From Isurus oxyrinchus (taxonomy: Eukaryota): a stretch of 64,000 bases of DNA. Where the stretch lies: contig JANJGN010000385.1 in the NCBI GenBank assembly GCA_026770705.1, positions 124,001-188,000 on the forward strand, written 5' to 3'. A program made the translations under genes and the position numbers. The notes below the pieces were generated by a model, which saw only the letters and a program-made list of their open reading frames with translations, ran no database searches and was not told the origin of the DNA. Shown piece after piece: positions 1,093 through 62,327 of this stretch (position 1 is its first letter; each line of letters starts with the position of its first letter).

Positions 1093-1209
1093 TTATAAAT
1101 TCCCATAAACAGAATCCTTGGCAAAATCACAGTTTGCGTAAAGATCATCATCTGTATCAGGATTGACTCCGCGGTTAGATTTCATTTCCAGATCCTTCTC
1201 ATCTTTCTT
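1093..1209 (-). CDS. Terminal cytoplasmic exon with DLYANC and SVYGNL (ITIM consensus)
   Basis: tctattacag| KKDEKDLEMKSNRGVNPDTDDDLYANCDFAKDSVYGNL*; candidate minus-strand AATAAA at 328-333. Confidence 0.7.
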   Translation of the reverse strand, partial: KKDEKDLEMKSNRGVNPDTDDDLYANCDFAKDSVYGNL

Positions 1210-1304
1210 CTGTAATAGAAACAGAAATGATCAGAGTGACAATCAGAGTGATCAGTGTTTAGTATTATTGATCCAAATCGAAAATTCCACCCACAATACA
1301 TACA

Positions 1305-2600
1305 TTAATTATTGACACTGAACAGGGTTTGATTATTGACACTGAATGGGGTTTGATTATTGATACTGAACAGGGTTTGATTATTGATACTGAACGGGGT
1401 TTGATTATTAATATTGAACGGGGTTCGATTATTGATACTGAACGGGGTTTGATTATTGATACTGAACGGGGTTTGATTATTGATACTGAACGGGGTTTGA
1501 TTATTGATACTGAATGGGATTTGTTTATTGATTCTGAACGGGGTTTGATTATTGATACTGAACGGGGTTTGATTATTGATACTGAACGGGGTTTGATTAT
1601 TAATACTGAACGGGGTTTGATTATTGTTACTGAATGGGGTTTGATTATTGACACTGAACGGGGGTTGATTATTGATACTGAACGGGGTTTGATTATTGAT
1701 ACTGAACGGGGGTTGATTATTGATACTGATCGGGGGTTGATTATTGATACTGAACGGGGATTGATTATTGACACTGAACGGGGTTTGATTATTGATTCTG
1801 AACGGGGTTTGATTATTGAAACTGTACGGGGTTTGATTATTGATTATGAACGAGTTTTGATTATTGATACTGAACGGGGTTTGATTATTGACACTGAACG
1901 GGGTTTGATTATTGATTCTGAACGGGGTTTGATTATTGATACTGTACGGGGTTTGATTATTGATTATGAACGGGTTTTGATTATTGATACTGAACGGGGT
2001 TTGATTATTGATTATGAACGGGTTTTGATTATTGACACTGAACAGGGTTTGATTATTTATACTGAACGGTGTTTGATTATTGATCCTGAACGGAGTTTGA
2101 TTATTGATCCTGAAAGGGGTTTGATTATTGATACTGAACTGGGTTTGATTATTGATACTGAACTGGGTTTGATTATTGATTCTGAAAGGAGTTTGATTAT
2201 TGATACTGAATGGGGTTTGATTATTGACATTGAACGGGGTTTGATTATTGATTCTAAACGGTGTTTGATTATTGAACCTGAACGGAGTTTGATTATTGAT
2301 ACTGAACGGGGTTTGTTTATTGATTCTGAACAGTGTTTGATTATTGATTCTGAAAGGGGTTTGATTATTGATACTGAACGGGGTTTGATTATTGATTCTG
2401 AACGGTGTTTGATTATTAATTCTGAACGGGGTTTGATTATTGATTCTGAACGGGGTTTGATTATTGATACTGAACGGGGTTTGATTATTGATTCTGAACG
2501 GGGTGTGATTATTGATACTGAACGGGGTTTGATTATTGATACTGAACGGGGTTTGATTATTGATACTGATCGGGGTTTGATTATTGATTCTGAACGGTGT
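1305..2600. repeat. 24-bp minisatellite (TGATACTGAACGGGGTTTGATTAT), ~54 copies
   Basis: Period 24 seen directly; explains the IIDTERGL / INNQTPFS / SIIKPRSV ORFs. Confidence 0.97.
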
Positions 2601-2730
2601 TGGGTGTGAGTTTGGTTGGGTTTGGGAGTGACTGTATAAAACATTGCAGATACAGGACTGGAGCAGCCATATCAATAACCAGGCTACTGGAGCAGCTGAG
2701 AGGCTGGGGATCCTGTGGTGTGTGACTCAC

Positions 2731-2835
2731 CTGATTCCTCAAAGCCCAACCACGCTCACAGTTTTCATAAACAGGACCTCGATATTCATCAACACGATGG
2801 TTCGATTTGATTCCTGCTTTCACCTCGCCTCTCTT
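2731..2835 (-). CDS. Cytoplasmic exon with YENC motif (gene A or remnant of another paralog)
   Basis: tctattacag| KRGEVKAGIKSNHRVDEYRGPVYENCERGWALRNQ |gtgagt; 105 nt, phase 0-0. Confidence 0.6.
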
Positions 2836-3180
2836 CTGTAATAGAGATGGAAATGGACAGAGTGACTATCAACATGATGTGTATTCGGTGTTGGGTTTGA
2901 TTATTGGGGAGAGAGTTCCAGATTTCCACTCCCCTTTGTGTGAAGAAGTGCTTCCTGACATCACCCCTGAACGGCCTGGCTCCAATCTGAAGTTCCAGCC
3001 CCCTTGTTCTAGACTCCACCCGACCCCCACCACCCACCCCCACCCGAGGGAATAGCTTCTCTCTATCGACCCTATCGAGTGTTTAATCAGTTTGAACCCC
3101 TCAGTTACATCACTCCTTTAATCTTCTAGACCTGAGGGAATATAATCGTAGACTGTGTGTAACCTGTCTGCATAATTTAA

Positions 3181-4188: not shown

Positions 4189-4285
4189 TTTCTCACACAC
4201 TTGAAGATGAAGAATCCACTCAGTCCAACACTCAAACAGATTCCAGCTCCAAGCAATCCTGCTTTCCATTCATTGGAATCTCGCC
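4189..4285 (-). CDS. Gene A transmembrane exon
   Basis: ttttacag| RDSNEWKAGLLGAGICLSVGLSGFFIFKCVRK |gtaagt; 97 nt, paralog of 46688-46784; not in the ORF track. Confidence 0.85.
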
Positions 4286-7200
4286 CTGTAAAATCAGCCA
4301 ATGAATGACTCCGGTACAGTTTGAGAATGGTTCCCTGTGTACATGTAGTAATTCTGAACTTGTGAAGTGATATTGTCTATGCATGAAAGGTCTATACAAA
4401 TAACATTTATCTATGTAATATTTATTGATAATATCCATGTACATGCAGGTTTCTATAAGGAGGATTCACATATAACAGAGGTGCCAAGCTGCTGAGGTGA
4501 CACACAGGACTACATACACACCAAACAGCGGAAACAACATGCTATAGACAGAGCAAAGCGATCCCACAACCAACGGGTCAGATCTAAGCTCTGCAGTCCT
4601 GCCACATCCAGTCATGAATGGTGATGGACAATTAAAGATCTAACAGGAGGAGGATGTTCCACAAATATCCCCATCCTTAATGATGGGGGAGCTCAGCACA
4701 TCAGTGCAAACGACAAGGCTGAAGCATTGGCAACCATGTTCAGCCAGAAGTGCTGAGTGGATGATCCATCTCGGCCTCCTCCAGAGGGTCCCAGCATCAC
4801 AGATGTCAGCTTTCAGACAATTCGATTGACTCCACGTGACATCAGCAATTAGCTGATGATACTGGATACAGCAAAGGCTATTGGCCCTGGCAACAACCCA
4901 GCAACAGGAAATAATGTGGCTACAAGAGCGGGTAAGAGGCTGGGAACTCTGCGGTGAGTAACTCACCTCCTGACCCCCCAAAGCCTGTCCACCATCGACA
5001 AGGCACAAGTCAGGAGTGTGATGGAATAATCTCCAATTGCCTGAATAAGTGCAGCTCCAACAACACTCAAGAAGCTCGACACCATCCAGGAGCAGCTTGT
5101 TTGATCGACAGCCCATCCACCAGCATAAACATTCATACCCTCCACCACTGGCACACAATGGCAGCAGTGTGTGCACCATCTACAAGATGCACTGCAGCAA
5201 CTCACCAAGGCTCCTTCGACAGCACCTTCCAAACTCTTAACCTCTTCCACCAAGACAGTTCCAAGTCAGTGAGGTGTGTGATTTGGAAGCGAACTTGAGG
5301 TGGTGGTCTGCCCTGGGACTTGGAAATATATTGGCCGTTCTTTCACCATCACTGGGACAAAATCCTGGAACTCCCACCCTAACAGCACTGAGGGTGTACC
5401 TACACCACAGGGAATGTAGTGGTTAAAGAAGGCAGCTCACCACCACCTTCTCAAGGGGCAGTTACAGATGGGCAATAATTTCTGGTCTTGTCAACAATGC
5501 CCACATCCCATGAGCTAACAACAAGAGAACGTTCAATTCTGTGTAACTCACGTTCCACAGTGATGGTTATGAATCTCTCCACTGCTCCATGTTCATTCTC
5601 TGCCACACACTGATATTCTCCAGTGTCCCTGGATGTAACGTGAGGAATCACCAACCACAGCTCATTGTTGGAACTTGTTCTGTTCATTGGGACATTAAGA
5701 TGTTGCCACGTCAGGTTAGAAGCTGGGAAGCTCTCGACAGAGCAGATTATCACTGCAGAATTCCCCTCAATTATATTGATTGATGAAGCGTTAATCATAT
5801 CAAGAGAATTAATTGAGAGATTCTGTGGTGTGTCTGAAAACAAATAAAGATCATTACTTACATTGACTGTGAAACGCTTTGAGACACCCTGAGAATGTGA
5901 AAGGTGTGATATCAATGTAGGTTCCTTCACCACAAAGCACTTAATTCAGGCAGACAATTCAGTTCAGTAGTGAGGGAGTGCTGTGTTGTTGGAGGGTCAG
6001 TACTGATGGAGTGCTGCACTGTTGGAGGGTCAGTACTGAGGTAGTGCTGCACTGTCAGAGGGTCAGTACTGAGGGAGAGCTGCCCTCTTGGCGCGTGAGT
6101 ACTGATGACCTGCTGCACTGTTGGAGGGCAGGTACTGTGAAAGCTGCACTGCCGCATAGTCAGTACTGAGCAAGTACTTCACTGTCAGAGAATCAGTACT
6201 GAGGGAGTGCTGAACTGTTGGAGGATCAGTACTGAGGGAGTGCTGCACTGTTGGGGGATCAGAACCGCTTCACTGAGTTTCGGTTAAAACTGAACTGGAA
6301 CACACACTGTCAGAGGGTCAGTACTGAGGGAGTGCTGCACTGTTGGAGAATCAGTACTGAGGGAGTGCTGCACTGTCAGAGGATCAAATTATTTCTGATC
6401 CAAACCCCATATTGTTGTATTGTTGATTCCGATGCAGCATTGTAGACTGACTTGTCCCCAAGCTCAGCACTGACCCTACTCCAGCAGACCCTGTGAAACA
6501 CACTAACAAAGCGCCTCTCGCCTGAGCTCTGCATGTGTTGGAGGTGCCGCTGTGGTGGGTTCATGACCTTCACCATCCGCTTCACTGAGTTTCGGTTAAA
6601 ACTGAAATGGAACACAAACTAAACGCTGATGGAAACCATCACTTCCTCTTCTCCAACATGAAGAGTTTCAGCAGAAGAGGTAAACTGTTGCTGAAAAGGA
6701 ACTTTCTTCATCATATCACAGAATCATATAGAATAGCAGGAGGCCATTCATGCCATCTTGGCTGTGCTAGCTCTTTAAAAGAAGCACACAATTGGTTTCA
6801 ATCCACCTCTCTTCCCCCATCGTCCTTCAAATTCTTCCTGTTCCAGATTGAATCCAAATTCATGAATATAAATCCCCTCAGATGGGAGTAACCATCACTG
6901 AGCAGGCAGGTTAGGTTTTATTGTGCACAGCGAGTTGCTGTGATCTGGAAGGTGCTGCCTGAAAGGGCGGTGGAAGCAGATTCAATAGGATCTTTCAAAA
7001 TACTTGCAGAGTGTGAGAGAATGGGAGATTGGGACCAATTGGATATCTGTCCCAGGAGACCAGGACAGGGACAATGGGCTGAGTGGCCTCTTTCTGTGCT
7101 GTTTGATTCTGTGGTTTTCTAATATTTATCTGCACTGCAGATCAGAGACAAACAGGAAACAATAAACTTCTGACCTTTCCACCCAGGCTGAATTGTCATC

Positions 7201-10200
7201 TCTTTATTTTCAGCCAGTTTGCTTAATTCTTGTGGTTTGGTGGTGAAACTGTGCAGCAAGTGTGAGTGTTGGGTTGTAGATCTGTCTATTCTGACTGCTG
7301 CTGTGCTCATGGTGACTTCTCAATTACATGAGAGTCTCTGAGATCCTCCACACCCAAGGATTAAGGAGAGACTTCCAAAGATTCAGGACCCTGTACTGAA
7401 GAGGTGCTGCACTGTCAGAGGGTCAGTACTGAGGGAGTGCTGCACTGTCAGAGGGTCAGTACTGAGGGAGTGCTGCACTGTCAGAGGGTCAGTACTGAGG
7501 AAGTGCTGCACTGTCAGAGGGTCAGTACTGAGGGAGTGCTGCACTGTCAGAGAGTCAGTACTGAGGGAGTGCTGCACTGTCAGAGGGTCAGTACTGAGGG
7601 AGTGCTGCACTGTCAGAGGGTCAGTACTGAAGCAATGCTGCACTGTCAGAGGGTCAGTATTGAGGGAGTGCTGCACTGTCAGAGGGTCAGTACTGAGGGA
7701 GTGCTGCACTGTAAGAGAGTCAGTACTGAAGCAATGCTGCACTGTCAGAGGGTCAGTACTGAAGAGGGACCCTGAGAATGTGAAAGGTGTGATATCAATG
7801 TAGGTTCCTTCACCACAAAGCACTTAATTCAGGCAGACACTTCAGTTCAGTACTGAGGGAGTGCTGTATTGTTGGAGGGTCAGTACTGATGGAGTGCTGC
7901 ACTGTTGGAGGGTCAGTACTGAGGTAGTGCTGCACTGTGGGAGGGTCAGTACTGAGGGAGAGCTGCCCTCTTGGCGCGTGAGTACTGATGACCTGCTGCA
8001 CTGTTGGAGGGCAGGTACTGTGAAAGCTGCACTGCCGCATAGTCAGTACTGAGCAAGTACTTCACTGTCAGAGAATCAGTACTGAGGGAGTGCTGAACTG
8101 TTGGAGGATCAGTACTGAGGGAGTGCTGCACTGTTGGAGGATCAGGACTGAGGGAGTGGTGCACTGTCGGAGGGTCAGTACTGATGGACTGCTGCACTGT
8201 TGGAAGATCAGTACTGAGGGAGTGCTGCACTGTCGGAGGGTCAGTACTGATGGAGTGGTGCACTGTCAGAGGGTCAGTACTGAGGGAGTGCTGCACTGTT
8301 GGAGGGTCAGTACTGAGGGAGTGCTGCACTGTTGGAGGGTCAGTACTAGGGGAGTGTTGCACTGTTGGAGGGCCAGTACTGGAAGAGTGCTGCACTCTCG
8401 GAGGGTCAGTACTTAGGGAATGCTGCACTGTCGGAGGGTCAGTACTGAGGGAGTGCTGCACTGTCGGAGGGTCAGTAATTAGGGAGCTCTGCACTGTTGG
8501 AGGGTCAGTACTGAGGGAGTGCTGCACTGTTGGAGGGTCAATACTTAGGGAATGCTGCACTGCCAGAGGGTCAGTACTGAGGGAGTGCTGCACTGTTGGA
8601 GGGTCAGTAATTAGGGAGATCTGCACTGTCGGAGGGTGATAAGACCATAAGACCACAGGACGTCAGAGCAGAAGGAGGCCATTCGGCCAATCAACTCTGC
8701 TCCGCCATTCAATGACACCATGGCTGATCTGACAATCCTCAACTCCACTTTCCTGCCTCTTCCCCATAGCCTTTGATTCCCTGACTGATTAAAAAACTGT
8801 GTATCTCAGCCTTGAATATAATTAATGACCCAGCCTCTGCAGCTCTCTGCAGTAAAGAATTCCACACATTCACTACCCTCTGAGAGAAGAAACTCCTCAT
8901 CTCTGTCTTAAATGGGTGACCCCTTACTCTGAGATTATGCCCTCTGGTCCTAGACTCTCCCACAAGGGGAAACAACCTCTCAGCATCTACCCTGTCAAGC
9001 ACCCTAAGAATCTTATATGTTTCAATAAGGTCAGCTCTCATTCTCCTAAACTCCAATGAGTACAGGCCCATCCTACTCAACCTCTCCTCATATGAAAATC
9101 CCTCCATTACTGGGATCAACTTAGTGAACCTTCTCGGGACTGCCTCCAATGCCAGTACATCTTTCCTTAGATAAGGGAACCAAAACTGCTCACAGTATTC
9201 TAGGTGTGGTCTAACTAGTGCCTTGTATAGTTTTAGCAAGGCTTCCCTATTTTTATACTCCTTTCCCTTTGAAATAAAGGCCAACATTCCACCTGCCTTC
9301 CCTATTAACTGTTGAACTTGTATGTTATCTTTCTGATGACCCCCAAATTCCTCTATGCTTCAGCTTTCCAATGTCTTTCTCCATTGAAATAATATTCAGC
9401 TCCTCTATACATCCTGCCACAGTGCAGCAGCTCACATTTTCCCACATTATATTCCATCTGCCAAGTTGATGCCCACTCACTGAACCTGTCTATGTCCCTC
9501 TGTAGACTCTTTGTGACACCCTCACCACTTGCCTTCCCATCTATTTTTGTGCCATCCACAAACTTGGCGATAGTACATTAATTTCCCTCATCCAAGTCAT
9601 TAATTATATATTGTAAATAATTGTGGCCCCAGCACTGATCCCTGTGGCAATCCACAGGTTGCCATCCTGAAAATGCCCCCCTTATCCCAACTCTCTGACT
9701 TCTATTAGTTAGCCGATCCTCTATCCATGCTAATATACTGCCCCCAACACCATGGGCTCTTATCTTATTAAGTAGCCTTATATGTGGTACTTTACTGAAT
9801 GCCTTTTGGAAATCCAAATATATTACATCTACTGGTTCCCCTTTATCTATCCTGTTTGTTACCTCCTCAAAGAATTCTAATAAATTTGTCATGCATGATT
9901 TCCCCTTCATGAAGCCTGTGTTTGTTTAAATTATGCATTTCTAAATAGTCTGCTATTACATCCTTTATAATGGACTCTAACATGTTCCCAATGACAGATG
10001 TTAAGCTAACTGGCCTATAGTTACCTGTTTGTTGTCTCCCTCCCTTTTTGAATATGGGTGTTACTTTGGCAGATTTCCAATCCTCTGGGAGTTTCCCAGA
10101 ATCTAAGGATTCTTGGAAGATTAAAACCAGTACATCCACTATCTCTGCATCTACTTCCTTTAATATCCTAAGATGCAACCTATCAGGTCCAGGGGACCTA

Positions 10201-13200
10201 TCAGACTTGAGACCCATTAGTTTCGCTAGCGTTATTCTCTAGTGATAGTTATTGTATTTATTTCCTCTCCCCACCCCCCTTTTGCCCCTTGATTATTTAG
10301 TATTTTTGGAATGATATTAGTGTGTTCTACCGTGAAGACTGATGCAAAGTATTTATTCAACTCCTCTGTCATTTTCTGGTTCCCCATTATTATTTCCCCA
10401 GCCTAGTTCTCTAAGGGGCCTATGAACACTTTGGTCTCTCTCTCCCTTTTTATATATTTAAAGGAGCTTTTATTGTCCTTTTTTATATCAATTGCTAGTT
10501 TACCTAGTTTTCTCCCTCTTTATTTATTTTTTGGTCATCTTCTGTTGGTTTTTAAAACTCTCTCAATCCTCTGGCTTACCACTAATCTTTGTCGTGCTGC
10601 ATGTTTTTTCTTTCAATTTGACACACACCTTAACTTCTTTGGGTAACCCAGGTTGGTTTATTCTCTTCCTACAATCCTTCTTTCTCACTGGGATATATCG
10701 TTGTTGTGAGTCATGAGCTATTTTCTTAAACATCTGCTTTGTTCATCCAGCATCTTTTCTGCTAAACCCCTTTCCCAGTCCACTCCAGACAACCCTGTCC
10801 TTATTCCTTTGTAATTACACTTATTTAAGTCCAGCACAGTTGTTTCCGACCCAGGTTTCTCAGTCTCAGAGGGAATGCTAAATTCTACCAGGTTATGTTC
10901 ACTGTTTTCCACGGGATCATTTATTCTGAGATCATGTATGAAACCTGCCTCATTACACATTACCAGATCCAAAATAGCCTGATCCCTGGTTAGATCCACG
11001 ACATATTATTCCAGGAAACTGTCTTGAATACACTCTATGAATTCTTGCTCATGGCTACCTCTGCCAATTGGGTTTTCCCAATCTACATGAAGATTAATGT
11101 ACTGCCTTTTTTACATGCCCTCATTATCTCATGATTTATTCTCTGTCCTACAGCCGAGCTACAGTCATGGGGCTGATAGACCACTCCCACCAGTTCCTAC
11201 CTCCCCTTGTTATTCATTACCTCGAGCCATATGGATTCTATACCCTCCGATCCAAGATCATTTCTTGCTTTCGTACTTATTCCATCTCCTATTAACAAAG
11301 CTACCCCACCACCTTTCCTTCCTGCCTGTCTTTTTGAAAAGACACATACCCCTGAATATTTATTTCAAAGCTTTGATCTCCTTGTAACCATGTCTCCATA
11401 ATGGCTATAAGATCAAACCCATTAACCTCTATTTTTGCCTTTAATTCATTTATTTTGTTCCAAATACTATGTGCATTTAAGTCAAGAGCCATTAATTTTG
11501 TCTTTTTATCATTTTCCTCCCTCTGACTCTATTTGCTGATGTATTTTAATGTTTGGACACTGTGTACCCACCTGTCACACACTGGGTATCATCACCAAAA
11601 CAGCTATCCTGCAATGCTGGCAAATCCTTTTGCTTTGTAAGCCTACATATACCCTCTCCAGAACACTCTCCCCATCTATTTAGTTTAAAGGCAATACTGA
11701 GGGAGAGCAGCACTGTCAAAGGGTCATTACTGAGGGAGTGTTGCACTGTCAGTGGGTCAGGACTGAGGGAGTGCTGCACTGTCAGAGGGTCAGTACTGAG
11801 GGAGTGCTGCACTGTCAGAGGGTCAGTACTGAGGGAGTGCTGACTGTCAGAGGGTCAGTACTGAGGGAGTGTTGCATTGTCATAGGGTCAGTACTGAGGG
11901 AGTGCTGCACTGTCATAGGGTCAGTACTGAGGGAGTGCTGCACTGTCAGGGGGTGAGTACATTGCGATTCCTGCTCTGCTCTATCGGTCTCTTGGCTGGA
12001 AATAAAAGCCGCTGTGTTACTGTTCAGAAACTGTTATTAATTGTGTTCTGGTCACTATTTTCCCTAAAAAACAGATTATCTGATTCTCATCAGAATACCT
12101 TTCTATGGGATCCTGCTGTGCATTATCTACACTGTTCTAGCTAATGTAGAATGAAAGGTGTCCGTACTTACATTGCACAGTTAGTACGAGGGTCCGCTCC
12201 GATGAAACAGATGGATATCTCACTCTGCAGCAGAGAGTGTGTCCGTGGTGTTTGAGTGATGGGATCAGGGTCAGAACAGAAGTATAGGTCAGAGTGACAC
12301 CATGCTGAGTTACAGTGTTTGAGACGGATCCAGGTACGTCAGTGGGAGTGTCCCAGGTTAAGACAGGTGCTGCTGTTCCATTGCACGTTGTGTTGAAGGT
12401 GCAGCTTACATCCACACGCTTTCCTGCAATAATTTCAGCAGGGAATATCGTGGGTTTATCTGTGAAATCTAAGAGACAGAAAATGGATCTTTTTAGAGAA
12501 ATATAACGTGAAGCATCAGTTCAAATAGAAATCACAGTCCCACAAGAGAAAGCACTTTTACAAGGATGATATCAGAACTGAGAGGTTACAATGATCAGGA
12601 AAGATTTTCTTGCTCTTTGGCAGTTGTGTTTCTGTCTCTCAGCTTAATACACGTTCACTCCGAGACATGTGAATTGAGAACACTGGATGAGAGAAGAGGC
12701 TCAGACCAGAGATTGGAGTTAAAAGCAGAATACTGCGGATGCTGGAAATCTGAAACAAAAACAAAAATTGCTGGAAAGACTCAGCAGGTCTGACAGTATC
12801 AGTGGAGAGGAAGACAGAGTTAACGTTTCGAGTCCGTATGACTCTTCATCAGACCAGAGGTTTGAGTTCACTGGCTTCTCATTTCCTCAGTGATCTGGGT
12901 GATTTATCACCTTGTGGTTTGTTGGATCTTGCTGTGCACAAACTGCCTGCTGTGTTTAACATCTGTGACCACAATTCAGGAATAATTTCATTGGCTGTGA
13001 AGGGATTTGGATCCACCTGAGGTGGTAAATTGCGCTGCAGAAATGCACATCTTTCTTTTATCGATACGTCAGACTTTTAAACAGGACAGGAGAGATTGAT
13101 GGGAGTGGATAACCTGATAATACAGTTAATGCTTTTCGTTATTGATATTAAAGTGAGTATTAGAGGTTGCTTTAGGACTGAACCGGAAGCTATCACCAGG

Positions 13201-15269: not shown

Positions 15270-15720
15270 TGTCCACTCCCAGATAATTCCTCAGCTTCTA
15301 ACTCTGAAGTTCTGAAAGAGAAAGGAGTTAATGAGACCTCACCTCTTGTCCAACAGCTCTCGAGAGATCAGAACTGCTTTTAGACAATGTCTTCACGGAT
15401 CTAATTTGATTCTCTGTGGGATGATAGGTGCTCTGCAGAGAGTTACAAGGCTTTAAGAAAGAAAAACATTGAAGGACTTGCATTTCTATAGCACCTTTCA
15501 ACACCTCAGGATATCCCAAAGCTCATGTCCCTGCACTTCCCTCATCCCTTGAGCTAGAAAGATGTTCTGTACAACAGACTTGAGCCTCACACCCAGATCT
15601 CAATAATTAGTAGAAATCTTTCAAAGGCATCAATCATTGGAATCTGTCTTTATAAAGTCACAACATCAACAAAGGACGGTGTTGGTCGTGGAAGTGAATT
15701 CCAATCGTTCCGTTACTTAC

Positions 15721-20767: not shown

Positions 20768-20807
20768 ATGATCGGGAAATCTTACTTCCTCCTGTCACTT
20801 CTCCAAG
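20768..20807 (+). CDS. Gene B leader exon coding part
   Basis: MIGKSYFLLSLLQ, donor AAG|GTAATA. Confidence 0.8.
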
Positions 20808-48483: not shown

Positions 48484-50960
48484 CTGTCGCTGATTACTAG
48501 GTACATGTTAATGAGGTTACAGTGATAGGGAGGTTTGTAGGGGCTGGAAGAGGTTACAAAGAAAGGGAGGGTTGTAGGGGCTGGAGGAGGTTATAGTGAT
48601 AGGGAGGGTTGTAGGGGCTGGTGGAGGTTAGAGAGATAGGGAGGGTTGTAGGGGCTGGAGGAGGTTACAGAGATAGGAGGGATGTAGGGGCTGGAGGAGG
48701 TTACAGAGATAGGGAGGAGTGTAGAGGCTGGAGGAGGTTACAGAGATAGGGAGAGTTGTAGGGGCTGGAGGAGGTTACAGAGATAGGGAGGGGTGTAGGG
48801 GCTGTAGGAAGTTACAGAGATAGGGAGGGTTGTGCGGGCTGGAGGAGGTTACAGAGATAGGGAGGGGGTGTAGGGGCTGGAGGAGCTTACAGAGATAGGG
48901 ACGGTTGTAGGGGTTGGAGGAGGTTACAGAGAATGGGAGGGTTGTAGGGACTGGAGGAGGTTACAGAGAATGGGAGGGTTGTAGGGACTGGAGGAGGTTA
49001 CAGAGATAGGGAGGGTTGTAGGCACTGGAGGAGGTTACAGAGATAGGGAGGGTTGTAGGGGCTGGAGGAGGTTACAGAGAATGGGAGGGTTGTAGGGACT
49101 GGAGGAGGTTACAGAGATAGGGAGTGTTGTAGGGGCTGGAGGAGGTTACAGAGATAGGGAGAGTTGTAGGGGCTGGAGGAGGTTACAGAGATAGGGAGGG
49201 TTGTGCGGGCTGGAGGAGGTTACAGAGATAGGGAGGGTTGTAGGGGCTGGAGGAGGTTACAGAGAATGGGAGGGTTGTAGGGACTGGAGGAGGTTACAGA
49301 GATAGGGAGGGGTGTAGGGACTGGAGGAGGTTACAGAGATAGGGAGGGGTGTAGGGGCTGGAGGAGGTTACAGAGATAGGGAGGGGTGTAGGGGCTGGAG
49401 GAGGTTACAGAGATAGGGAGGGTTGTAGGGACTGGAGGAGGTTACAGAGATAGGGAGGGGTGTAGGGACTGGAGGAGGTTACAGAGATAGGGAGGGGTGT
49501 AGGGACTGGAGGAGGTTACAGAGATAGGGAGGGGTGTAGGGGCTGGAGGAGGTTACAGAGATAGGGAGGGGTGTAGGGGCTGGAGGAGGTTACAGAGATA
49601 GGGAGGGTTGTAGGGACTGGAGGAGGTTACAGAGAATGGGAGGGTTGTAGGGACTGGAGGAGGTTACAGAGATAGGGAACGCTGTAGGGACTGGAGGAGG
49701 TTACAGAGAATGGGAGGGTTGTAGGGACTGGAGGAGGTTACAGAGATAGGGAGGGGTGTAGGGACTGGAGGAGGTTACAGAGAATGGGAGGGTTGTAGGG
49801 ACTGGAGGAGGTTACAGAGATAGGGAACGCTGTAGGGGCTGGAGGAAATTTAAAATCAATATGCTGCTAACCAGGAGCCAATGCTGGTCAGTGAGCACCA
49901 GAGATGATAGGTGAGTGGGACTCAGTGCGAGTTAAGGCACGGGCAGCAGAGGTTCGGATGACCTCAAGTTTATGGAGGGTCAGGGCTAAGGGATTGCTGC
50001 ACTGTTGGAGGGTCAGTACTGAGTGAGAGCTGCACTGTCAGTGGGTCAGTTCCGAGGGAGTGCTGCACTGTCAGAGGGTCGGTGCTAAGGAAGTGCTGCA
50101 CTGTTGGAGGGTCAGGGCTAAGGGAGTGCTGCACTGTTGGAGGGTCAGTTCCGAGGGAGTGCTGCACTGTCAGAGGGTCAGTTCCGAGGGAGTGCTGCAC
50201 TGTCGGAGGGTCAGGGCTAAGGGAGTGCTGCACTGTTGGAGGGTCAGTTCCGAGGGAGTGCTGCACTGTCAGAGGGTCAGTTCCGAGGGAGTGCTGCACT
50301 GTCGGAGGGTCAGTTCCGAGGGAGTGCTGCACTGTCAGAGGGTTGGTGCTAAGGAAGTGCTGCACTGTTGGAGGGTCAGTACTGAGGGAGTGCTGCACTG
50401 TCGGAGGGTCAGTACTGAGGGAGTGCGAGACTGACAGAGGGTCAGTAATGAGGGACTGTGAGACTGACAGAGGGTCAGTAATGAGGGAGTGTGAGACTGA
50501 CAGAGGGTCACTATTGAGGATGTGCTGCACAGTCGGGGGGGTCAGTACTGAGGGAGCACTGCACTGCCATAGGTGGTTTCCTTCAGATGACATGAGAGAG
50601 AGGGTTAAACCTATTGAGACACGACCGACACTAACGAGGCTGCACAATAATTTAACCCTATCAGTGCCAGTAAATGATGTGAGGATGTCTTCTGTTTCCA
50701 TTTCTCTGTAGGGTAAACAGAACGTGCTGATTACTGAGCCCCGGAACACAACCAGAGACACAACTAGTGAGGGGGAGACCCCAGCTCCCCGGGGTCTCTC
50801 TGAAGGTGCATTGGGAGGCGATGCTGGACATGGAATCCCTAACAATCCCGACGAGCTTCTCTACGCCAATACCCAAGTCTTCAGGGTGCCCAGTGGTGAT
50901 GGGTCTGTCCACAGGGAAGAGGAGACGGAATACGCACAGATCAGCTTCAAGCGAAACTGA
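38102..50960 (+). CDS. Gene C: complete Siglec/MAG-like type I receptor (leader, V-set, 3 C2-set, TM, ITIM-like + ITSM tail), 8 coding exons, 569 aa
   Basis: Join 38102-38141, 39003-39371, 40230-40526, 42689-42970, 45000-45293, 46688-46784, 47482-47563, 50712-50960 = 1710 nt, open frame. All introns are GT-AG and phases are compatible (1,1,1,1,1,2,0). The N gap at 42011-42274 could hide an extra exon. Confidence 0.88.
38565..38685. promoter_or_regulatory. Putative haematopoietic intronic enhancer of gene C
   Basis: RUNX sites at 38570, 38579, 38652; E-box CAGCTG 38589; ETS CACTTCCTG 38626 and AGGAAGT 38662. Confidence 0.5.
39003..39371 (+). CDS. Gene C Siglec-type V-set exon
   Basis: ELSQEWKGDTPREVTAQEGSCVQIPCHYSYP...DGDCSLIINNITREDAGPYFFRIE. 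Shows the Siglec Cys pattern (B-E strand pair plus interdomain Cys) and the F-strand Arg in YFFR. ccccag| acceptor and |gtaagt donor. Confidence 0.93.
39843..39880 (+). ncRNA. Minimal type I hammerhead ribozyme (Penelope-type), intron of gene C
   Basis: GGT-CTGATGA-A-GAGTC-atacg-GACTC-GAAAC-GTTA-ACC: both core boxes, 5-bp stem II, 3-bp stem I, palindromic minimal stem III. Confidence 0.7.
40230..40526 (+). CDS. Gene C C2-set domain 2 exon
   Basis: DFTDKPTILPAEIIAGKRVDVSCTFNTTCNGTAAPVLTW...LCCRVRYPSVSSERTLVLTVQ; 297 nt, AG/GT, phase 1-1. Confidence 0.92.
40900..41660. mobile_element. CR1 3' tail (-) abutting Gypsy integrase C-terminal fragment (+)
   Basis: CR1 tail 40900-41338; PLKARFSG..VNYLIDTPD..INMLKRY at ~41500-41645. 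Confidence 0.7.
41872..42010. repeat. (CA)n microsatellite running into assembly gap
   Basis: Direct. Confidence 0.95.
42011..42274. other. Assembly gap (N)
   Basis: 264 N. Confidence 1.
42689..42970 (+). CDS. Gene C Ig domain 3 exon
   Basis: DGPQNLSITS...IICSVESFPASNLTW...DTGDYQCVAENEHG; 282 nt, AG/GT. Confidence 0.92.
43010..43298 (-). mobile_element. RTE-clade LINE 3' fragment
   Basis: MLRISWMDRKTNE..LTTIEGE..KR..W pattern of the RTE RT C-terminus. Confidence 0.7.
43299..44350 (-). mobile_element. Penelope-like element fragment (GIY-YIG endonuclease) with degenerate hammerhead
   Basis: NLIYCIHCSQCGLLYMGQTKHRLGDR..EH..LEEQHLIF..LN; hammerhead-like motif at ~43330-43362 with GAAA>CAAA. 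Confidence 0.88.
44350..44930 (-). mobile_element. L2-like LINE fragment with internal 37-bp expansion
   Basis: ELHWLPVRQ..FKI L2-type motif; 37-bp units at ~44500-44690. Confidence 0.7.
45000..45293 (+). CDS. Gene C membrane-proximal Ig domain 4 exon (MAG domain 5-like)
   Basis: KPEISQQSECTRRSEGVTCVCVATSNPAGDLTWHLPSANISG...SCSVQNPH. The C..CxC..SNP pattern is typical of the MAG/Siglec juxtamembrane domain. 294 nt, AG/GT. Confidence 0.88.
45640..46160. repeat. AT-rich ~38-bp minisatellite
   Basis: tatataaatgttacatagattacattgataaa units. Confidence 0.88.
46688..46784 (+). CDS. Gene C transmembrane exon
   Basis: tttacag| GRDSSKWTVGLFTAGIMLSVFLFEMFIFICVRK |gtaagt; 97 nt, phase 1-2. Confidence 0.88.
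46920..47345 (-). mobile_element. LINE 3' fragment (same family as 4505-5512)
   Basis: LRQHLPNPRPLPSRRTRAA..WNSL..HHLLKG. Confidence 0.8.
47482..47563 (+). CDS. Gene C cytoplasmic exon 1
   Basis: ttgcag| RKTAMEERVSGTSDIALTPSPLSVKRQ |gtacag. Phase 2-0 bridges the TM and last exon exactly. Confidence 0.72.
47699..48425. mobile_element. Solo-LTR-like element
   Basis: TGTTATGA...TCATGACA inverted termini; homologous to 54991-55820. Confidence 0.65.
48510..49850. repeat. G-rich 37-bp minisatellite (GGGAGGGTTGTAGGGGCTGGAGGAGGTTACAGAGATA), ~36 copies
   Basis: Direct periodicity. Confidence 0.96.
49970..50570. repeat. 33-bp minisatellite
   Basis: Same unit family. Confidence 0.92.
50712..50960 (+). 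CDS. Gene C terminal cytoplasmic exon with LLYANT and TEYAQI motifs
   Basis: ctctgtag| GKQNVLITEP...DELLYANTQVF...EETEYAQISFKRN*; typical Siglec two-tyrosine tail. Confidence 0.88.
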   Translation, partial: GKQNVLITEPRNTTRDTTSEGETPAPRGLSEGALGGDAGHGIPNNPDELLYANTQVFRVPSGDGSVHREEETEYAQISFKRN

Positions 50961-51147: not shown

Positions 51148-51332
51148 NNNNNNNNNNNNNNNNNNNNNNNNNNNNNNNNNNNNNNNNNNNNNNNNNNNNN
51201 NNNNNNNNNNNNNNNNNNNNNNNNNNNNNNNNNNNNNNNNNNNNNNNNNNNNNNNNNNNNNNNNNNNNNNNNNNNNNNNNNNNNNNNNNNNNNNNNNNNN
51301 NNNNNNNNNNNNNNNNNNNNNNNNNNNNNNNN
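51148..51332. other. Assembly gap (N)
   Basis: 185 N, in the gene C 3' UTR region. Confidence 1.
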
Positions 51333-56120: not shown

Positions 56121-57001
56121 AAACAAAAACAGAATTACCTGGAAAAACTCAGCAGGTCTGGCAGCATCAGCGGAGTAGAAAAGAGTTGAGGTTTCGAGTC
56201 CTCATGACCCTTCAACTGTGAGGAGGACACAAAGGGGCTGCAGAGGGAGATAAATAGTTTCAGTGAGGGGACAAAAAAATGAGTGGTTGGAATGTAAGGA
56301 ATGAAAACGTCAGATTGTCCAGCTGATCCTACTTGTTCTGTTCTTATATTCTTATACAGACACAGGGTTTACTGACAGTGCACAGCAAAGTGCTGTTCTC
56401 TCACTTTGTTCCAACTTCCTCATTTTGTCTCACAGTGACACATCAACCCTTTCTCATTAAATACACAGAGGGAGCAGCACAGGAAGAGGTCATTCAGCCC
56501 AAGCAGAGCGTGTGGGCAGTTCCTCCCCAGGCGAGCAGTCGGACAGGTCCTGGGTAAGTAACGGAACGATTGGAATTCACTTCCACCACCAACACCGTCC
56601 TTTGTTGATGTTGACTTTATAAAGACAGATTCCAATGATTGATGCCTTTGAAAGATTTCTACTGATTATTGAGATCTGGGTGTGAGGCTCAAGTCTGTTG
56701 TACTGCACATCTTTCTAGCTCAAGGGATGAGGGAAGTGGAGTGACATGAGATTTTGGATGCTCTGAGGTGGTGAAAGGTGCTATACAAATGCAAATCCTT
56801 CATTGTTTTTCTTCCTTAAAGCCTTGTAACTCTCTGCAGAGCACCTATCATCCCACCGTGAATCAAATTAGTCAGTGAATACATTGTCTAAAAGGAGTTC
56901 TGATCTTTCAAGAGCTGTCGGACAAGAGGTGAGGACTCATTAACTCCTTTCTCTTTCAGATTTTGAGAGTGAGAAGTGAATGGAATATCTGGGAGTGGAC
57001 A

Positions 57002-57041
57002 ATGATCGGGAAATCTTACTTCCTCCTGTCACTTCTCCAAG
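57002..57041 (+). CDS. Leader exon D1 coding part
   Basis: MIGKSYFLLSLLQ, exon 56960-57041, AG/GT intact. Confidence 0.65.
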
Positions 57042-58767
57042 GTAATATCATCGTCAGCTTGGACAGATTTATGGTAAAGTGTCTTTGTAAAGATCATTCT
57101 TATTGAGCTGTGATTGGGAACTGATTCAGCAGTGAGCCAGTGTACAAACTCATACCAAGTCCCATTCACCCATCACCCCTGTGCTCACTGATATACACTG
57201 ACTCCCTGTCTGAAAGCAGAATTGGAGGAGAATAGAGATCTCAGAGGGTTGTAGGGGCGGGAGGAGGTTACAGGGTTAGGCAGGATTGTAGCAGCTAGAG
57301 CAGAATCTTAAACTTCAGGTGATGTCGGCTATTGGTCAGTGATAGATGGGGAGTGATGGGTTGAGCAGAAAATCAGGGAAAAAAACTGGGGGATGAAATC
57401 TATCCAGGTGCTAGGATTCTGAAAGCAAAAACCAGAAATTTGAGTCTTTTGCTGATTTTAGACAGATTTTCCCATGAAGACAACACAGCAGCTCCTAGAA
57501 TAGACAGGCTGTTCAGTGTCACACTTCCTGTCCAGTCTCACCATGCTAGATACTTCAATAAGGGAGCAAGATAACTGAAAGAGAGAAGGAAGGTAAAGCT
57601 GTCTGTGTGTAAAACTGTCAAATATTCTGAGTTATCATGATTGTCTCTGATCTGCTGCAGAGTTTAAATTTCACAGAATCTGAGCACTTTGCAGCTCAGA
57701 GAGAGACCATTGACTCACTGCCTGAAAGGGCGGTGGAAGCAGATTCAACAGGAACTTTCAGAAGGGGAACTGGATAAATACTTGAAGGGGACATTTTGCA
57801 GGGCTGTGGAGGAGAGAGCAGAGCTGAGCGTGGGACTAATTGGACAGATCTTTCAAAGCCTCAACTATTCACAATCTACATTAGTGACTTGGATGAAGGG
57901 ACTGACTGTACTGTAGGCAGATTTTCTGACTGTGTGGTGAAGATAGGTAGGAAATATATAAGCTGTGCAGGAAAGCAAGTTGTGAGGAGGACACAAAGAG
58001 GCTGCAGAGGGAGATTAATAGTTTCAGTGAGTGGATAAAAAAATGAGTGGTTGGCATAGAAGGAATGAAAATGTCAGGGTGTCCAGCTGATCCTACTTGT
58101 TCTGTTCTTATATTCTTATACAGACACAGGGTTTACTGACAGTGCACAGCAAAGTGCGGTTCACTCACTTTGTTCCAACTTCCTCATTTTGTCTCACAGT
58201 GACACATCAGCTCTTTCTAATTAAATACACAGAGGGAGCAGCACAGGAAGAGGTCATTCAGCCCAAGCAGAGCGTGTGGGCAGTTCCTCCCCAGGCGAGC
58301 AGTCGGACAGGTCCTGGGTAAGTAACGGAACGATTGGAATTCACTTCCACCACCAACACTGTCCTTTGTTGATGTTGTGACTTTATAAAGACAGATTCCA
58401 ATGATTGATGCCTTTGAAAGATTTCTACTGATTATTGAGATCTGGGTGTGAGGCTCAATTCTGTTGTACAGAACATCTTTCTAGCTCAGGGGATGAGGGA
58501 AGTGGAGTGACATGAGCTTTTGGATGCTCTGAGGTGGTGAAAGGTGCTATACAAATGCAAATCCTTCATTGTTTTTCTTCCTTAAAGCCTTGTAACTCTC
58601 TGCAGAGCACCTATCATCCCACCGTGAATCAAATTAGTCTGTGAAGACATTGTCTAAAAGGAGTTCTGATCTTTCGAGAGCTGTCGGACAAGAGGTGAGG
58701 TCTATTTAACTCCTTTCTCTTTCAGAGTTTGAGAGTGAGAAGTGAATGGAATATCTGGGAGTGGACA

Positions 58768-58807
58768 ATGATCGGGAAATCTTACTTCCTCCTGTCACTT
58801 CTCCAAG
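58768..58807 (+). CDS. Leader exon D2 coding part
   Basis: MIGKSYFLLSLLQ, exon 58726-58807. Confidence 0.65.
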
Positions 58808-60520
58808 GTAATATCATCGTCAGCTTGGACAGATTTATGGTAAAGGGTCTTTGTAAAGATCAATCTTATTGATCTCTGATTGGGAACTAATTCAGCAGTG
58901 AGCCAGTGTACAAACTCATACCAAGTCCCATTCACCCATCACCCCTGTGCTCACTGATATACACTGACTCCCTGTCTGACAGCAGAATTGGAGGAGAATA
59001 GAGATCTCAGAGGGTTGTAGGGGCTGGAGACGGTTACACAATTAGGCAGGATTGTAGCAGCTAGAGCAGGATCTTAAACTTCAGGTGATGTCGAGTGTTG
59101 GTCAGTGATAGATGGGGAGTGATGGGTTGAGCAGAAAATCAGGGAAAGAACCTGAAATCTATCCAGGTGCTAGGACTCTGATAGCAAAAACCTGAAATTT
59201 GTGTCTTTTGCTGATTTTGGTCAGAATTTCCCATGAAGACAACACAGCAGCTCCTAGAATAGACAGGCTGTTCAGTGTCACACTTCCTGCCCATTCTCAC
59301 CATGCTAGATACTTCAATAAGGGAGCAAGATAACTGAAAGAGAGAAGGGAGGCAAAGCTGTCTGTGTGTAAAACTGTCAAATATTCTGAGTTATCATGAT
59401 TGTCTCTGACCTGCTGCAGAGTTTAAATTTCACAGAATCTGAGCACTTTGCAGCTCAGAGAGAGACCATTGACTCACTGCCTGAAAGGGCGGTGGAAGCA
59501 GATTCAACAGGAACTTTCAGAAGGGGAACTGGATAAATACTTGAAGGGGACATTTTGCAGGGCTTTGAAGGAGAGAGCAGAGCTGAGCGTGGGAATAATT
59601 AGACAGATATTTCAAAGCCTCAACTATTCACAATCTACATTAATGACTTGGATGAAGAGACTGACTGTACTGTCGGCAGATTTTCTGATTGTATGGTGAA
59701 GATAGGTAGCAAATATATAAGCTGTGCTGGAAAGCTGGTTGTGAGGAGGACACAAAGAGGCTGCAGAGGGAGATAAATAGTTTCAGTGAGTGGATAAAAA
59801 AATGAGTGGTTGGCATAGAAGGAATGGAAAATATCAGGGTGTCCAGCTGATCCTACTTGTTCTGTTCTTATATTCTTATACATACACAGGGTTTACTGAC
59901 AGTGCACAGCAAAGTGCGGTTCACTCACTTTGTTCCAACTTCCTCTTTTAAACACACAGACACATTAACCCTTTCTGATTAAATACACAGAGGGAGCAGC
60001 ACAGGAAGAGGTCATTCAGCTCAAGCAGAGCGTGTGGGCAGTTCCTCCCCAGGCGAGCAGTCGGACAGGTCCTGGGTAAGTAACGGAACGATTGGAATTC
60101 ACTTCCACGACCAACACCGTCCTTTGCTGATGTTGACTTTATAAAGACAGATTCCAATGATTGATGCCTTTGAAAGATTTCTACTGATTATTGAGATCTG
60201 GTGTGAGGCTCAAGTCTGTTGTACTGCACATCTTTCTAGCTCAAGGGATGAGGGAAGTGGAGTGACGAGATTTTGGATGCCCTGAGGTGGTGAAAGGTGC
60301 TATACAAATGCAAATCCTTCATTGTTTTTCTTCCTTAAAGCCTTGTAACTCTCTGCAGAGCACCTATCATCCCACCGTGAATCAAATTAGTCAGTGAAGA
60401 CATTGTCTAAAAGGAGTTCTGATCTTGCAAGAGCTGTCGGACAAGAGGTGAGGACTCATTAAATTCTTTCTCTTTCAGAGTTTGAGATTGAGAAGTGAAT
60501 GGAATATCTGGGAGTGGACA

Positions 60521-60560
60521 ATGATCGGGAAATGTTACTTCCTCCTGTCACTTCTCCAAG
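60521..60560 (+). CDS. Leader exon D3 coding part
   Basis: MIGKCYFLLSLLQ, exon 60479-60560. Confidence 0.65.
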
Positions 60561-62287
60561 GTAATATCATCGTCAGCTTGGACAGATTTATGGTAAAGTG
60601 TCTTTGTAAAGATCATTCTCATTGAGCTGTGATTGGGAACTAATTCAGCAGTGAGCCAGTGTACAAACTCATACCAAGTCCCATTCACCCATCACCCCTG
60701 TGCTCACTGAAATACACTGACTCCCTGTCTGACAGCAGAATTGGAGGAGAATAGAGATCTCAGAGCGTTGTAGGGGCTGGAGACGGTTACACAATTAGGC
60801 AGGATTGTAGCAGCTAGAGCAGAATCTTAAACTTCAGGTGATGTCGGCTGTTGGTCAGTGATAGATGGGGAGTGATGGGTTGAGCAGAAAATCAGGGAAA
60901 AAAACAGGGGGATGACAGCTATCCTGACGCTAGGACACGGATAACAATGCGCTGTAATTTTGTGTCTATTGCTGATTTTAGTCAGAATTTCCCATGAAGA
61001 CAACACAGCAGCTCCTAGAATAGACAGGCTGTTCAGTGTCACACTTCCTGTCCATTCTCACCTTGCTAGATACTTCAATAAGGGAGCAAGATAACTGAAA
61101 GAGACAAGGAAGGTAAAGCTGTCCGTGTGTAAAGGTGTCAAATATTCTGAGTTATCATGAGTGTCTCTGACCTGCTGCAGAGTTTAAATTTCACAGAATC
61201 TGAGCACTTTGCAGCTCAGAGAGAGACCATTGACTCACTGCCTGAAAGGGCGGTGGAAGCAGATTCAACAGGAACTTTCAGAAGGGGAACTGGATAAATA
61301 CTTGAAGGGGACATTTTGCAGGGCTTTGGAGGAGAGAGCAGAGCTGAGCGTGGGAATAATTAGACAGATATTTCAAAGCATCAACTATTCACAATCTACA
61401 TTAGTGACTTGGATGAAGGGACTGACTGTACTGTAGGCAGATTTTCTGACTGTATGGTGAAGATAGGTAGGAAATATATAAGCTGTGCAGGAAAGCAAGT
61501 TGTGAGGAGGACACAAAGAGGCTGCAGAGGAAGATAAATAGTTTCAGTGAGTGGATAAAAAAATGAGTGGCTGGCATGTAAGGAATGAAAATGTCAGGGT
61601 GTCCAGCTGATCCTACTTGTTCTGTTCTTATATTCTTATACAGACACAGGGTTTGCTAACAGTGCACAGCTAAGTGCTGTTCACTCACTTTGTTCCAACT
61701 TCCTCATTTTGTCTCACAGAGACACATCAGCTCTTTCTAATTAAATACACAGAGGGAGCAGCACAGGAAGAGGTCATTCAGCCCAAGCAGAGCGTGTGGG
61801 CAGTTCCTCCCCAGGCGAGCAGTCGGACAGGTCCTGGGTAAGTAACGGAACGATTGGAATTCACTTCCACCGCCAACACCGTACTTTGTTGATGTTGTGA
61901 CTTTATAAAGACAGATTCCAATGATTGATGCCTTTGAAAGATTTCTACTGATTATTGAGATCTGGGTGTGAGGGTCAAGTCTGTTGTACAGAACATCTTT
62001 CTAGCTCAAGGGATGAGGGAAGTGGAGTGACATGAGATTTTGGATGCTCTGAGGTGGTGAAAGGTGCTATACAAATGCAAATCCTTCATTGTTTTTCTTC
62101 CTTAAAGCCTTGTAACTCTCTGCAGAGCACCTATCATCCCACCGTGAATCAAATTAGTCAGTGAAGACATTGTCTAAAAGGAGTTCTGATCTCTTGAGAG
62201 CTGTCGGACAAGAGGTGAGGTCTCATTAACTCCTTTCTCTTTCAGAGTTTGAGATTGAGAAGTGAATGTAATATCTGGGAGTAGACA

Positions 62288-62327
62288 ATGATCGGGAAAT
62301 CTTACTTCCTCCTGTCACTTCTCCAAG
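62288..62327 (+). CDS. Leader exon D4 coding part
   Basis: MIGKSYFLLSLLQ, exon 62246-62327; the downstream intron resembles gene A intron 2, so a V exon is expected beyond the window. Confidence 0.72.

Follow-up and report, generated by a model that had tools for sequence, protein, structure and literature searches.

The stretch of DNA analysed here (the window) covers 64 kb of the genome of the shark Isurus oxyrinchus (assembly GCA_026770705.1, contig JANJGN010000385.1, positions 124,001 to 188,000 of the forward strand). It contains a group of Siglec-like immunoglobulin (Ig) receptor genes, here called A, B and C. Self-comparison and a six-frame motif search of the window show Ig-receptor exons clustered on both strands, amid minisatellites and retroelement fragments. 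The motif YFFRIE is found in four V-type exons, at 13328–13696 (minus strand) and at 28519–28893, 31077–31453 and 39003–39371 (all plus strand).

The models of genes A and C were worked out exon by exon from the sequence, and the exon borders were fixed by alignment. Both genes are complete and in frame, gene A running on the minus strand from 15269 to 1093 and gene C on the plus strand from 38102 to 50960. All borders are AG/GT and the phases are consistent throughout. The exons, including those encoding the transmembrane (TM) helices and the tails with their candidate immunoreceptor tyrosine-based inhibitory and switch motifs (ITIM and ITSM), are as follows.

Gene A, minus strand:
15231–15269, minus: leader exon (MIGKSYFLLSLLQ, phase 1 donor), from the six-frame motif search; 100% identical to the gene C leader
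13328–13696, minus: V-set exon, Siglec-type, with the YFFRIE arginine; 97.3% identical to the gene C V exon
12172–12468, minus: C2-set exon; 95% identical to basking shark protein P0215
5552–5833, minus: Ig3 exon (I-set/Ig_3 type, MAG domain-4-like); Pfam and PDB results from the gene C copy
4189–4285, minus: TM exon, uncharged helix WKAGLLGAGICLSVGLSGFFIF, phase 1 to 2; 94% identical to P0215
3350–3434, minus: cytoplasmic exon 1 (GSSTGRGHSAQAERVGSSSPGEQLDRYW); P0215 match
2731–2835, minus: cytoplasmic exon 2 (DEYRGPVYENC, YxN motif); motif search and P0215 match
1093–1209, minus: last coding exon (DLYANC, YxN; SVYGNL, ITIM consensus; stop codon TAA at 1095–1093); P0215 match

Gene C, plus strand:
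38102–38140, plus: leader exon; motif search
39003–39371, plus: V-set exon, Siglec-type; PDB, Pfam and fold matches
40230–40526, plus: C2-set exon; Pfam and MAG domain 2 match
42689–42970, plus: Ig3 exon; Pfam and MAG domain 4 match
45000–45293, plus: Ig4 exon, membrane-proximal, MAG domain-5-like; 94% identical to white shark protein P0159
46688–46784, plus: TM exon (WTVGLFTAGIMLSVFLFEMFIFICV, Glu codon at 46756–46758); P0159 match
47482–47563, plus: cytoplasmic exon 1 (RKTAMEERVSGTSDIALTPSPLSVKRQ); P0159 match
50712–50960, plus: last coding exon (LLYANT, degenerate ITIM; TEYAQI, ITSM; stop codon); motif search and P0159 match

The tail of gene A carries the motifs DEYRGP, PVYENC, DLYANC and SVYGNL. 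Three of its tyrosines lie in YxN motifs, a type recognised by the SH2 domain of Grb2. The first-pass annotation of this DNA, made from the letters alone, had given gene A an uncharged TM segment followed by YENC, YANC and SVYGNL exons. This is borne out (TM exon 4285–4189), with the refinement that YENC and YANC are YxN motifs and not ITIMs. Only the last motif, SVYGNL, is also an ITIM by the consensus S/I/V/LxYxxI/V/L, and it gives the locus a member with a canonical ITIM. Every exon of gene A, the three tail exons included, is 81–95% identical to P0215.

Gene C has the tail that the same annotation described, with LLYANT and TEYAQI in its last exon (50712–50960), spaced 23 residues apart. 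TEYAQI matches the ITSM consensus. LLYANT has Thr at +3, where the ITIM consensus wants Ile, Val or Leu; many relatives have Ile here (LLYANI, LLYASI). The leader, V, C2, Ig4, TM and tail exons are 81–100% identical to P0159, which is without an Ig3 domain; the Ig3 exon is matched instead by P0215 and P0238. The TM helix contains the sequence FLFEMFIF, with Glu at a place where the orthologs of white and basking shark read AGII or VGIF. A mid-helix Glu is also present in the family members P0164 and P0237. An acidic helix residue is unusual in a receptor with a tyrosine-bearing tail.

It is of interest to compare genes A and C directly. The leaders are 100% identical, the V exons 97.3%, the introns between V and C2 97.1% and the C2 exons 98.0%, and the identity then falls to about 60% within the first 300 bases past C2. 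Further downstream the Ig3 exons are 95.7% identical within flanks that cannot be aligned, identity between the TM exons is 73%, and there is no relation between the tails. A and C are linked genes whose presumed ligand-binding domains are near-identical and whose signalling parts diverge. Since the border is sharp and the intron is as similar as the exons, this pattern, judged from sequence, marks a block that was recently duplicated or gene-converted, as seen in the paired receptors of mammals.

The bases that differ between A and C are mostly non-synonymous, in a ratio of non-synonymous to synonymous of 7 to 3 in V and 10 to 1 in Ig3. In the Ig3 exons (5552–5833 against 42689–42970), 10 of the 11 differing bases fall in amino-acid-changing codons. 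A sharp difference between otherwise nearly identical V exons is located in the C–C′ loop, for which there are two types, ENQPRGGVWFNNEKQIPW and ARSPVGIWYMRRNWETWNEW, seen when 28617–28690 and 31175–31250 are set beside 39095–39170 and 13604–13530. Both loop types occur in tandem within single white and basking shark proteins.

Gene B lies between A and C, and has a TM exon containing an arginine (Arg-TM).

Gene B, plus strand:
28519–28893, plus: V exon B1, intact, with a distinct C–C′ loop (YLVARSPVGIWYMRRNWETWNEWP); alignment
31077–31453, plus: V pseudo-exon B2, with a 1-bp deletion, a TAA stop, donor GT changed to GA and the upstream flank replaced
32267–32561, plus: C2 exon with a 2-bp deletion, which causes a frameshift and loss of the F-strand Cys
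32885–33037, plus: Ig3 remnant, 3′ half only, donor kept
34156–34295, plus: Arg-TM exon, ILHVILILGIRAVIFLVAVVITIAGVCVW plus ERQTVKGSRQTV and stop; Arg codon 34200–34202, TGA 34293–34295, phase 1 acceptor

B1 is about 90% identical to the V exons of A and C, and its loop is of the type that two-V proteins of white and basking shark have in their first V domain. The Arg-TM exon is intact and reads SGGEILHVILILGIRAVIFLVAVVITIAGVCVWERQTVKGSRQTV followed by a stop codon, in agreement with the first-pass description of a TM arginine and a tyrosine-free tail of 12 residues (ERQTVKGSRQTV). The deletion in C2 alters its exit phase, and the TM exon is then read in a frame that encodes no helix (open reading frame 34127–34414). 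With these lesions, a V–C2–TM product is out of frame as assembled. To give an in-frame product, either B1 would have to join the Arg-TM exon directly or the 2-bp deletion would have to be an assembly error. The proposal that one near-identical head is attached to three different back ends therefore stands for A and C (97–100%) and fails for B, in which one V exon is dead, C2 is frameshifted, Ig3 is truncated and B1 is only about 90% identical.

Siglec identity and elasmobranch relatives

A phmmer search of the PDB with the V exon gave Siglec-5 (E 7e-15), MAG (1.5e-14) and Siglec-7 (2.7e-14), with the next non-Siglec at 1e-8. Siglec-8, CD33, Siglec-10 and sialoadhesin are also near (E 7e-15 to 5e-12), and Siglec-15 and CD22 are weaker (CD22 E 1e-4). 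In Pfam, the Ig exons of gene C match V-set and Ig_CD22. The sequence FFRIE of the V exon aligns with FFRVE of Siglec-5 (GSYFFRVE), and FFRIE, which holds, in its YFFRxE context, the strand-F arginine that in Siglecs touches the carboxylate of sialic acid, is present in all four V exons of the window. The cysteines follow the Siglec pattern, in which strand B has CxxxxC, strand E a Cys that takes the place of the usual one on strand F, and the first C2 domain one Cys more: the V domain has SCVQIPC and DCSLII and no Cys in YFFRIE, and the C2 domain has SCTFNTTC and LCC.

AlphaFold, run with an alignment of 42 relatives, gave a confident model for the V exon (predicted local distance difference test score, pLDDT, 92.4). 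C21, C26, C84 and R102 are nearly invariant in these 42 sequences. A Foldseek search with the model returned Siglec V domains at essentially each listed rank down to about 43, with TMq values of 0.78–0.88. The best fold match was MAG (TMq 0.88, root-mean-square deviation 1.7 Å). Sequence matches and predicted fold together support the view that the V domain is a Siglec V domain, as the first-pass annotation had suggested.

The C2, Ig3 and Ig4 exons match MAG domains 2, 4 and 5 respectively, and MAG domain 5 is the sole strong match of Ig4. By pairwise PDB matches, Siglec-5, Siglec-7, CD33 and MAG are at about the same distance from the V domain, and CD22 and Siglec-15 are far from it. We considered whether these genes are orthologs of MAG (Siglec-4), and rejected this. 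There are several copies within 64 kb, with three to four Ig exons each and with ITIM, ITSM and YxN tails, and the family is expanded in every elasmobranch listed.

At least 120 relatives were listed, all of them from sharks, skates and rays. Nearly all carry NCBI names of the form Siglec-5 to -14, CD33-like or MAG-like, these being automatic models named after assorted human Siglecs. The basking and white shark proteins are 81–92% identical to the window genes in the V domain. More widely, the XP_078389734 family of Cetorhinus, XP_041037177/79/80 and the P0246 cluster of Carcharodon and XP_072326180 of Scyliorhinus torazame have 67–92% V identity to the A/C type. In common with the window, the NCBI elasmobranch proteins have the three tail types, the leader MIGKSYFLLSLLQ and the Arg-TM cassette ILGIRAVIF.

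Among the relatives that were fetched, at least 15 proteins have a tail with an ITIM plus TEYxxI, and at least 10 have a YxN tail with a terminal ITIM-like motif, (S/V)xYxN(V/I/L/M). The third type has the Arg-TM cassette ILGIRA(V/G)IF and a tail of 8–15 residues, and is found in white shark (P0246, P0200, P0204), two catsharks (P0006, P0219, P0228, P0116) and bamboo shark (P0023). These Arg-TM short-tail members, from four shark species, carry the same head and are annotated as intact. The 12-residue tail is nearly unchanged between catshark (ERRTVKGSRQTV) and the window (ERQTVKGSRQTV). A search with the Arg-TM cassette matched only family members of white shark and catsharks. Stingray P0205 has a different Arg-bearing helix, again with a short tail. 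For white shark P0011 (ITIM/ITSM tail), P0014 (YxN tail) and P0246 (Arg-TM), the same longest contig of 1,818,738 bases is listed, and this shared figure suggests that the three tail types are linked in that species.

A profile of 21 elasmobranch tails matches Siglec-like tails of turtle, frog and ray-finned fish (for example ELADLHYASVDFSK...ATEYSEIR), with E-values of 1e-5 to 1e-2 in about 170 proteins; the best reversed-sequence control was 0.38. This is suggestive only of an old inhibitory tail, since short motifs can converge.

A search of the literature found no paper describing shark, elasmobranch or cartilaginous-fish Siglecs or paired receptors. Paired Ig receptors in general, paired Siglecs among them, are familiar, and the shark genes are already present in automatic annotation. 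What is new here is the exact models of two head-sharing genes with different tyrosine-bearing tails, together with a transcribed, decaying member of activating type.

Transcripts of the gene B region and competing readings

Read evidence was taken from assembled contigs of four runs over the region 28300–34299. Contigs of this kind drop rare variants. Runs X4 and X18 are labelled as possible RNA, a status that is a guess; X1 is a DNA run, and X17 comes from a sister organism. Two GT..AG joints, 28893>32267 (V to C2) and 32561>34156 (C2 to Arg-TM), are present in X4 and X18, and neither was found in the contigs of the DNA run X1. In X17, a contig of 674 bases extends from 32774 across the Ig3 remnant as far as 33037 and is there joined to 34156–34299. 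The first 110 of these bases belong to the flank of the truncated Ig3 exon that is specific to the locus, and the contig therefore derives from the orthologous locus. Within the TM exon it carries a 1-bp deletion, at 34184. A contig of X4 spans the intron–exon stretch 33857–34164 with one mismatch, which indicates that the gene B locus, or a near-identical copy, is transcribed. In the DNA run X1 the V, C2, Ig3 and Arg-TM exons have a summed contig depth tens of times that of unique pieces of intron. Such a sum cannot be read as a copy number; it is a hint that the genome has dozens of near-identical copies of the exons.

Our preferred reading, which we consider probable as a whole, is that these genes belong to a large family of elasmobranch Ig receptors of Siglec type (MAG/CD33-like), arranged as inverted and tandem duplicates, in which genes A and C are intact and gene B is a decaying activating-type member whose locus is transcribed. 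A and C would be single-pass receptors with unrelated membrane and cytoplasmic parts, whose leader–V–C2 heads have been kept, or recently made, near-identical by duplication or gene conversion of a 1.8-kb block. The V domain would bind a sialylated ligand through the YFFRIE arginine, with the variable C–C′ loop setting ligand specificity. Once phosphorylated, SVYGNL and TEYAQI, in the ITIM/ITSM tails, would recruit SH2 phosphatases, and the YxN sites Grb2-type adaptors. The Arg-TM members would signal through an adaptor with an Asp-bearing (acidic) TM helix and an ITAM (immunoreceptor tyrosine-based activation motif).

Several points weigh against this reading. All contigs, those from DNA included, have the letters of A-/C-type paralogs at 32307, 32317, 32490 and the 2-bp deletion; because these are sites in C2 that are specific to B, the C2-bearing RNA contigs stem from paralogs. 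The mature mRNA of gene B itself was not seen among the contigs of the four runs, whose status as RNA is a guess. What is shown for the family is that the head is spliced onto the Arg-TM exon; gene B itself is seen only to be transcribed and to have its TM acceptor used. In gene C, the first tail motif (LLYANT) is not a canonical ITIM, and the TM helix contains Glu. An FcR-gamma homolog, a candidate adaptor for the Arg-TM members, was not found in sharks in a 2014 survey (PMC4016189). Orthology to MAG, CD22 or the CD33-related Siglecs is ambiguous. The roles in ligand binding and signalling are inferred.

The first-pass annotation described the locus as a paired inhibitory and activating system. 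In the window, no gene that combines a basic TM residue with a short tail free of tyrosine was found intact; gene B has a frameshifted C2, one dead V and a truncated Ig3. Since the Arg-TM gene is degenerate as assembled, and A and C both have tyrosine-bearing tails, no inhibitory/activating pair is demonstrated in the window. The description applies instead to the family, with its Arg-TM members in other sharks and its spliced joints. Joints onto the Arg-TM exon are seen in the family and the V domains fall among the Siglecs, the two matters on which the proposal had been staked.

Gene B could nevertheless work as an activating receptor, which would make a true pair in the window, if the C2 deletion were an assembly error in its (AC)n/(TC)n context or if C2 were skipped. 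The deletion does lie within a dinucleotide run. B1 and the Arg-TM exon are both intact with good splice sites, and both are phase 1, so that skipping C2 would keep the frame and give a one-domain receptor; the dead V lacks a donor and the Ig3 remnant an acceptor, and splicing would pass over both in any case. Transcription of the locus is seen, and the joints fall exactly on exon borders of B. Against this, three separate lesions in one gene point to decay, no joint from V to Arg-TM is among those listed, the RNA contigs have paralog letters over C2, and the only locus-specific contig, that of X17 from the sister organism, has the 1-bp deletion at 34184 in its TM exon. We consider a working gene B unlikely, though by no means negligible.

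The heads might instead be derived from Siglecs that have lost binding to sialic acid and now recognise other ligands, such as pathogen or self proteins, in an arms race that does not involve glycans. This would suit the mostly non-synonymous differences between A and C and the sharply different C–C′ loop types, and some mammalian Siglecs no longer bind sialic acid (PMC13358205). It is improbable in view of the essential arginine, its YFFRxE context and the Siglec cysteines, which are kept in all V exons of the window and are nearly invariant in 42 relatives.

It is also conceivable that B and C are one complex locus, with B1 as the first V, the V of gene C as the second (as in P0159) and the Arg-TM exon as an alternative or abandoned terminal exon. 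Tails would then be picked by alternative splicing or polyadenylation, and would not belong to separate genes. White and basking shark models do have a V1 with an MRR-type loop followed by a V2 with an ENQ-type loop, the loop of B1 being of the V1 type and that of the gene C V exon of the V2 type, and every Ig exon is phase 1-1. However, gene C has its own promoter–leader cassette 0.9 kb upstream of its V exon, the observed joints from the B1 donor lead to the C2 exon at 32267, and about 10 kb, including a terminal exon with a stop codon, separates B1 from the V of gene C. A single locus is therefore very improbable.

One head might also have been placed twice by the assembly, in inverted orientation, which would make the near-identity of A and C in this part an artefact. 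This is barely credible despite the two gaps and many repeats in the window, given that the copies differ at about 3% of sites in exons and intron alike, that each head runs into different downstream exons supported by orthologs, and that the introns between leader and V differ in length (1534 bases in A, 862 in C).

Leader exons, repeats and gaps

Seven leader exons in the window code for MIGKSYFLLSLLQ or a one-residue variant of it, at 15269 (minus strand) and at 20768, 38102, 57002, 58768, 60521 and 62288 (plus strand). This N-terminus is common to many of the shark relatives. No convincing signal peptide was found within 230 bases upstream of a V exon; homologs show that the true leader lies 0.9–1.5 kb upstream of it. 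Self-comparison identified an inverted repeat, 14611–15859 against 21424–20178, which takes in the leaders of gene A and, probably, of gene B. The remaining features are listed below.

20768–20806, plus: leader exon, probably of gene B; head to head with the gene A leader
56217–63077, plus: four tandem 1.76-kb cassettes, each with a leader exon (57002–57040, 58768–58806, 60521–60559, 62288–62326)
42011–42274, no strand: assembly gap 1, in the C2–Ig3 intron of gene C, directly after a (CA)n run
51148–51332, no strand: assembly gap 2, starting 187 bases beyond the last base of the gene C stop codon

The four tandem cassettes are 94–95% identical, and one of them reads MIGKCYF. No V exon was found after them within the window, nor between them, and they may be alternative first exons of a gene that lies past the end of the window.

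About 0.5 kb upstream of every leader exon there is an 85-base element that resembles an exon, with AG/GT flanks (37566–37654; near 15813–15724 on the minus strand, 20225–20314, 56461–56550, 58225–58314, 59983–60072 and 61745–61834). It is approximately 93% identical to the first cytoplasmic exon of gene A (3434–3350), and may be an exon of the 5′ untranslated region or a relic of a duplicated unit.

Minisatellite arrays with periods of about 24, 33 and 37 bases are located at 1305–2601, 5886–8637, 35640–37290, 48513–49846 and 49973–50573. They sit in introns of genes A and C and between genes, and yield long spurious open reading frames. Two retroelement fragments, both on the minus strand, are found at 8739–10217, in the C2–Ig3 intron of gene A, and at 18088–19317, between the leaders of A and B. 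One has a weak match to reverse transcriptase and the other a weak match to a retroviral-type aspartyl protease, both below the Pfam cut-offs.

Neither assembly gap is crossed by any exon or reading frame. An Ig exon hidden in gap 1 would keep the frame, every Ig exon here being phase 1-1. Directly after this gap, bases 42275–42352 encode 26 residues with 88% identity to the C-terminus of white shark P0212. In the P0212 model the matching residues are preceded by a partial Ig3 domain, and gap 1 may thus hide an Ig3 remnant.

Comparison with known Siglecs and the origin of pairing

The human pairs Siglec-5/14 and Siglec-11/16 have much in common with genes A and C: they are linked genes with near-identical V–C2 heads, the intron included, and a sharp drop in identity downstream. 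As in the shark family, ITIM-type tyrosines mark one type of partner, and a basic TM residue together with a very short tail marks the other. They differ in that the two intact head-sharing genes of the window both have tyrosine-bearing tails, the Arg-TM gene being degenerate. The shark genes also have extra Ig3 and Ig4 modules, heads with two V domains, and an inverted duplication of the head block. The mammalian pairs arose within mammals, and the shark pairing is therefore not the same event; it must have arisen independently of both.

MAG is the best match to the V fold, and its domains 2, 4 and 5 correspond to C2, Ig3 and Ig4. However, it is a single conserved gene with five domains and a tail that is not of ITIM type, whereas the shark genes are multi-copy, have ITIM, ITSM and YxN tails and Arg-TM forms, and are without an equivalent of domain 3. 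The CD33-related Siglecs (CD33, Siglec-5, -7, -8, -9 and -10) resemble the shark genes in V sequence (E 1e-13 to 1e-14), in the V–C2 core, and in a tail with a membrane-proximal xxYAxx and a distal TEYxxI spaced 23 residues apart. They differ in that LLYANT of gene C has Thr at +3, and the YxN tail of the A type is atypical of this group. CD22 (Siglec-2) is comparable to gene A in its tail, which pairs YxN motifs with a terminal ITIM, as does that of a CD22-like turtle protein, P0016 (EVYENM ... IVYSNV); but its V domain is only weakly similar (E 1e-4), and it has seven Ig domains.

We hypothesise, as a tentative proposal that is rather unlikely as it stands, that Siglecs of CD33 type, with a V–C2 head and a tail with an ITIM plus TEYxxI, were already present in the common ancestor of jawed vertebrates, in the MAG/CD22/hepcidin region, and that the elasmobranch expansion repeatedly builds pairs by moving the head block between ITIM/ITSM, YxN and Arg-TM back ends. 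In human, HAMP adjoins MAG and CD22 on 19q13.1. If this is true, the mammalian CD33-related cluster and its pairs would be a late replay of an old design and not a mammalian invention.

Reviews describe Siglec-1, CD22, MAG and Siglec-15 as old and conserved, and the CD33-related and paired Siglecs as fast-evolving and largely mammalian (PMC9630641, PMC13358205). A family in sharks and rays that has Siglec heads together with CD33-like ITIM/ITSM, YxN and Arg-TM back ends challenges this picture of a mammalian addition. It also raises the question of which adaptor serves the Arg-TM receptors of sharks. The window itself would be an example of turnover within such a family, with a transcribed, decaying activating member beside two intact genes with tyrosine-bearing tails. 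It thereby becomes possible to test, at the base of the jawed vertebrates, how inhibitory signalling by Siglecs and the design of paired receptors arose.

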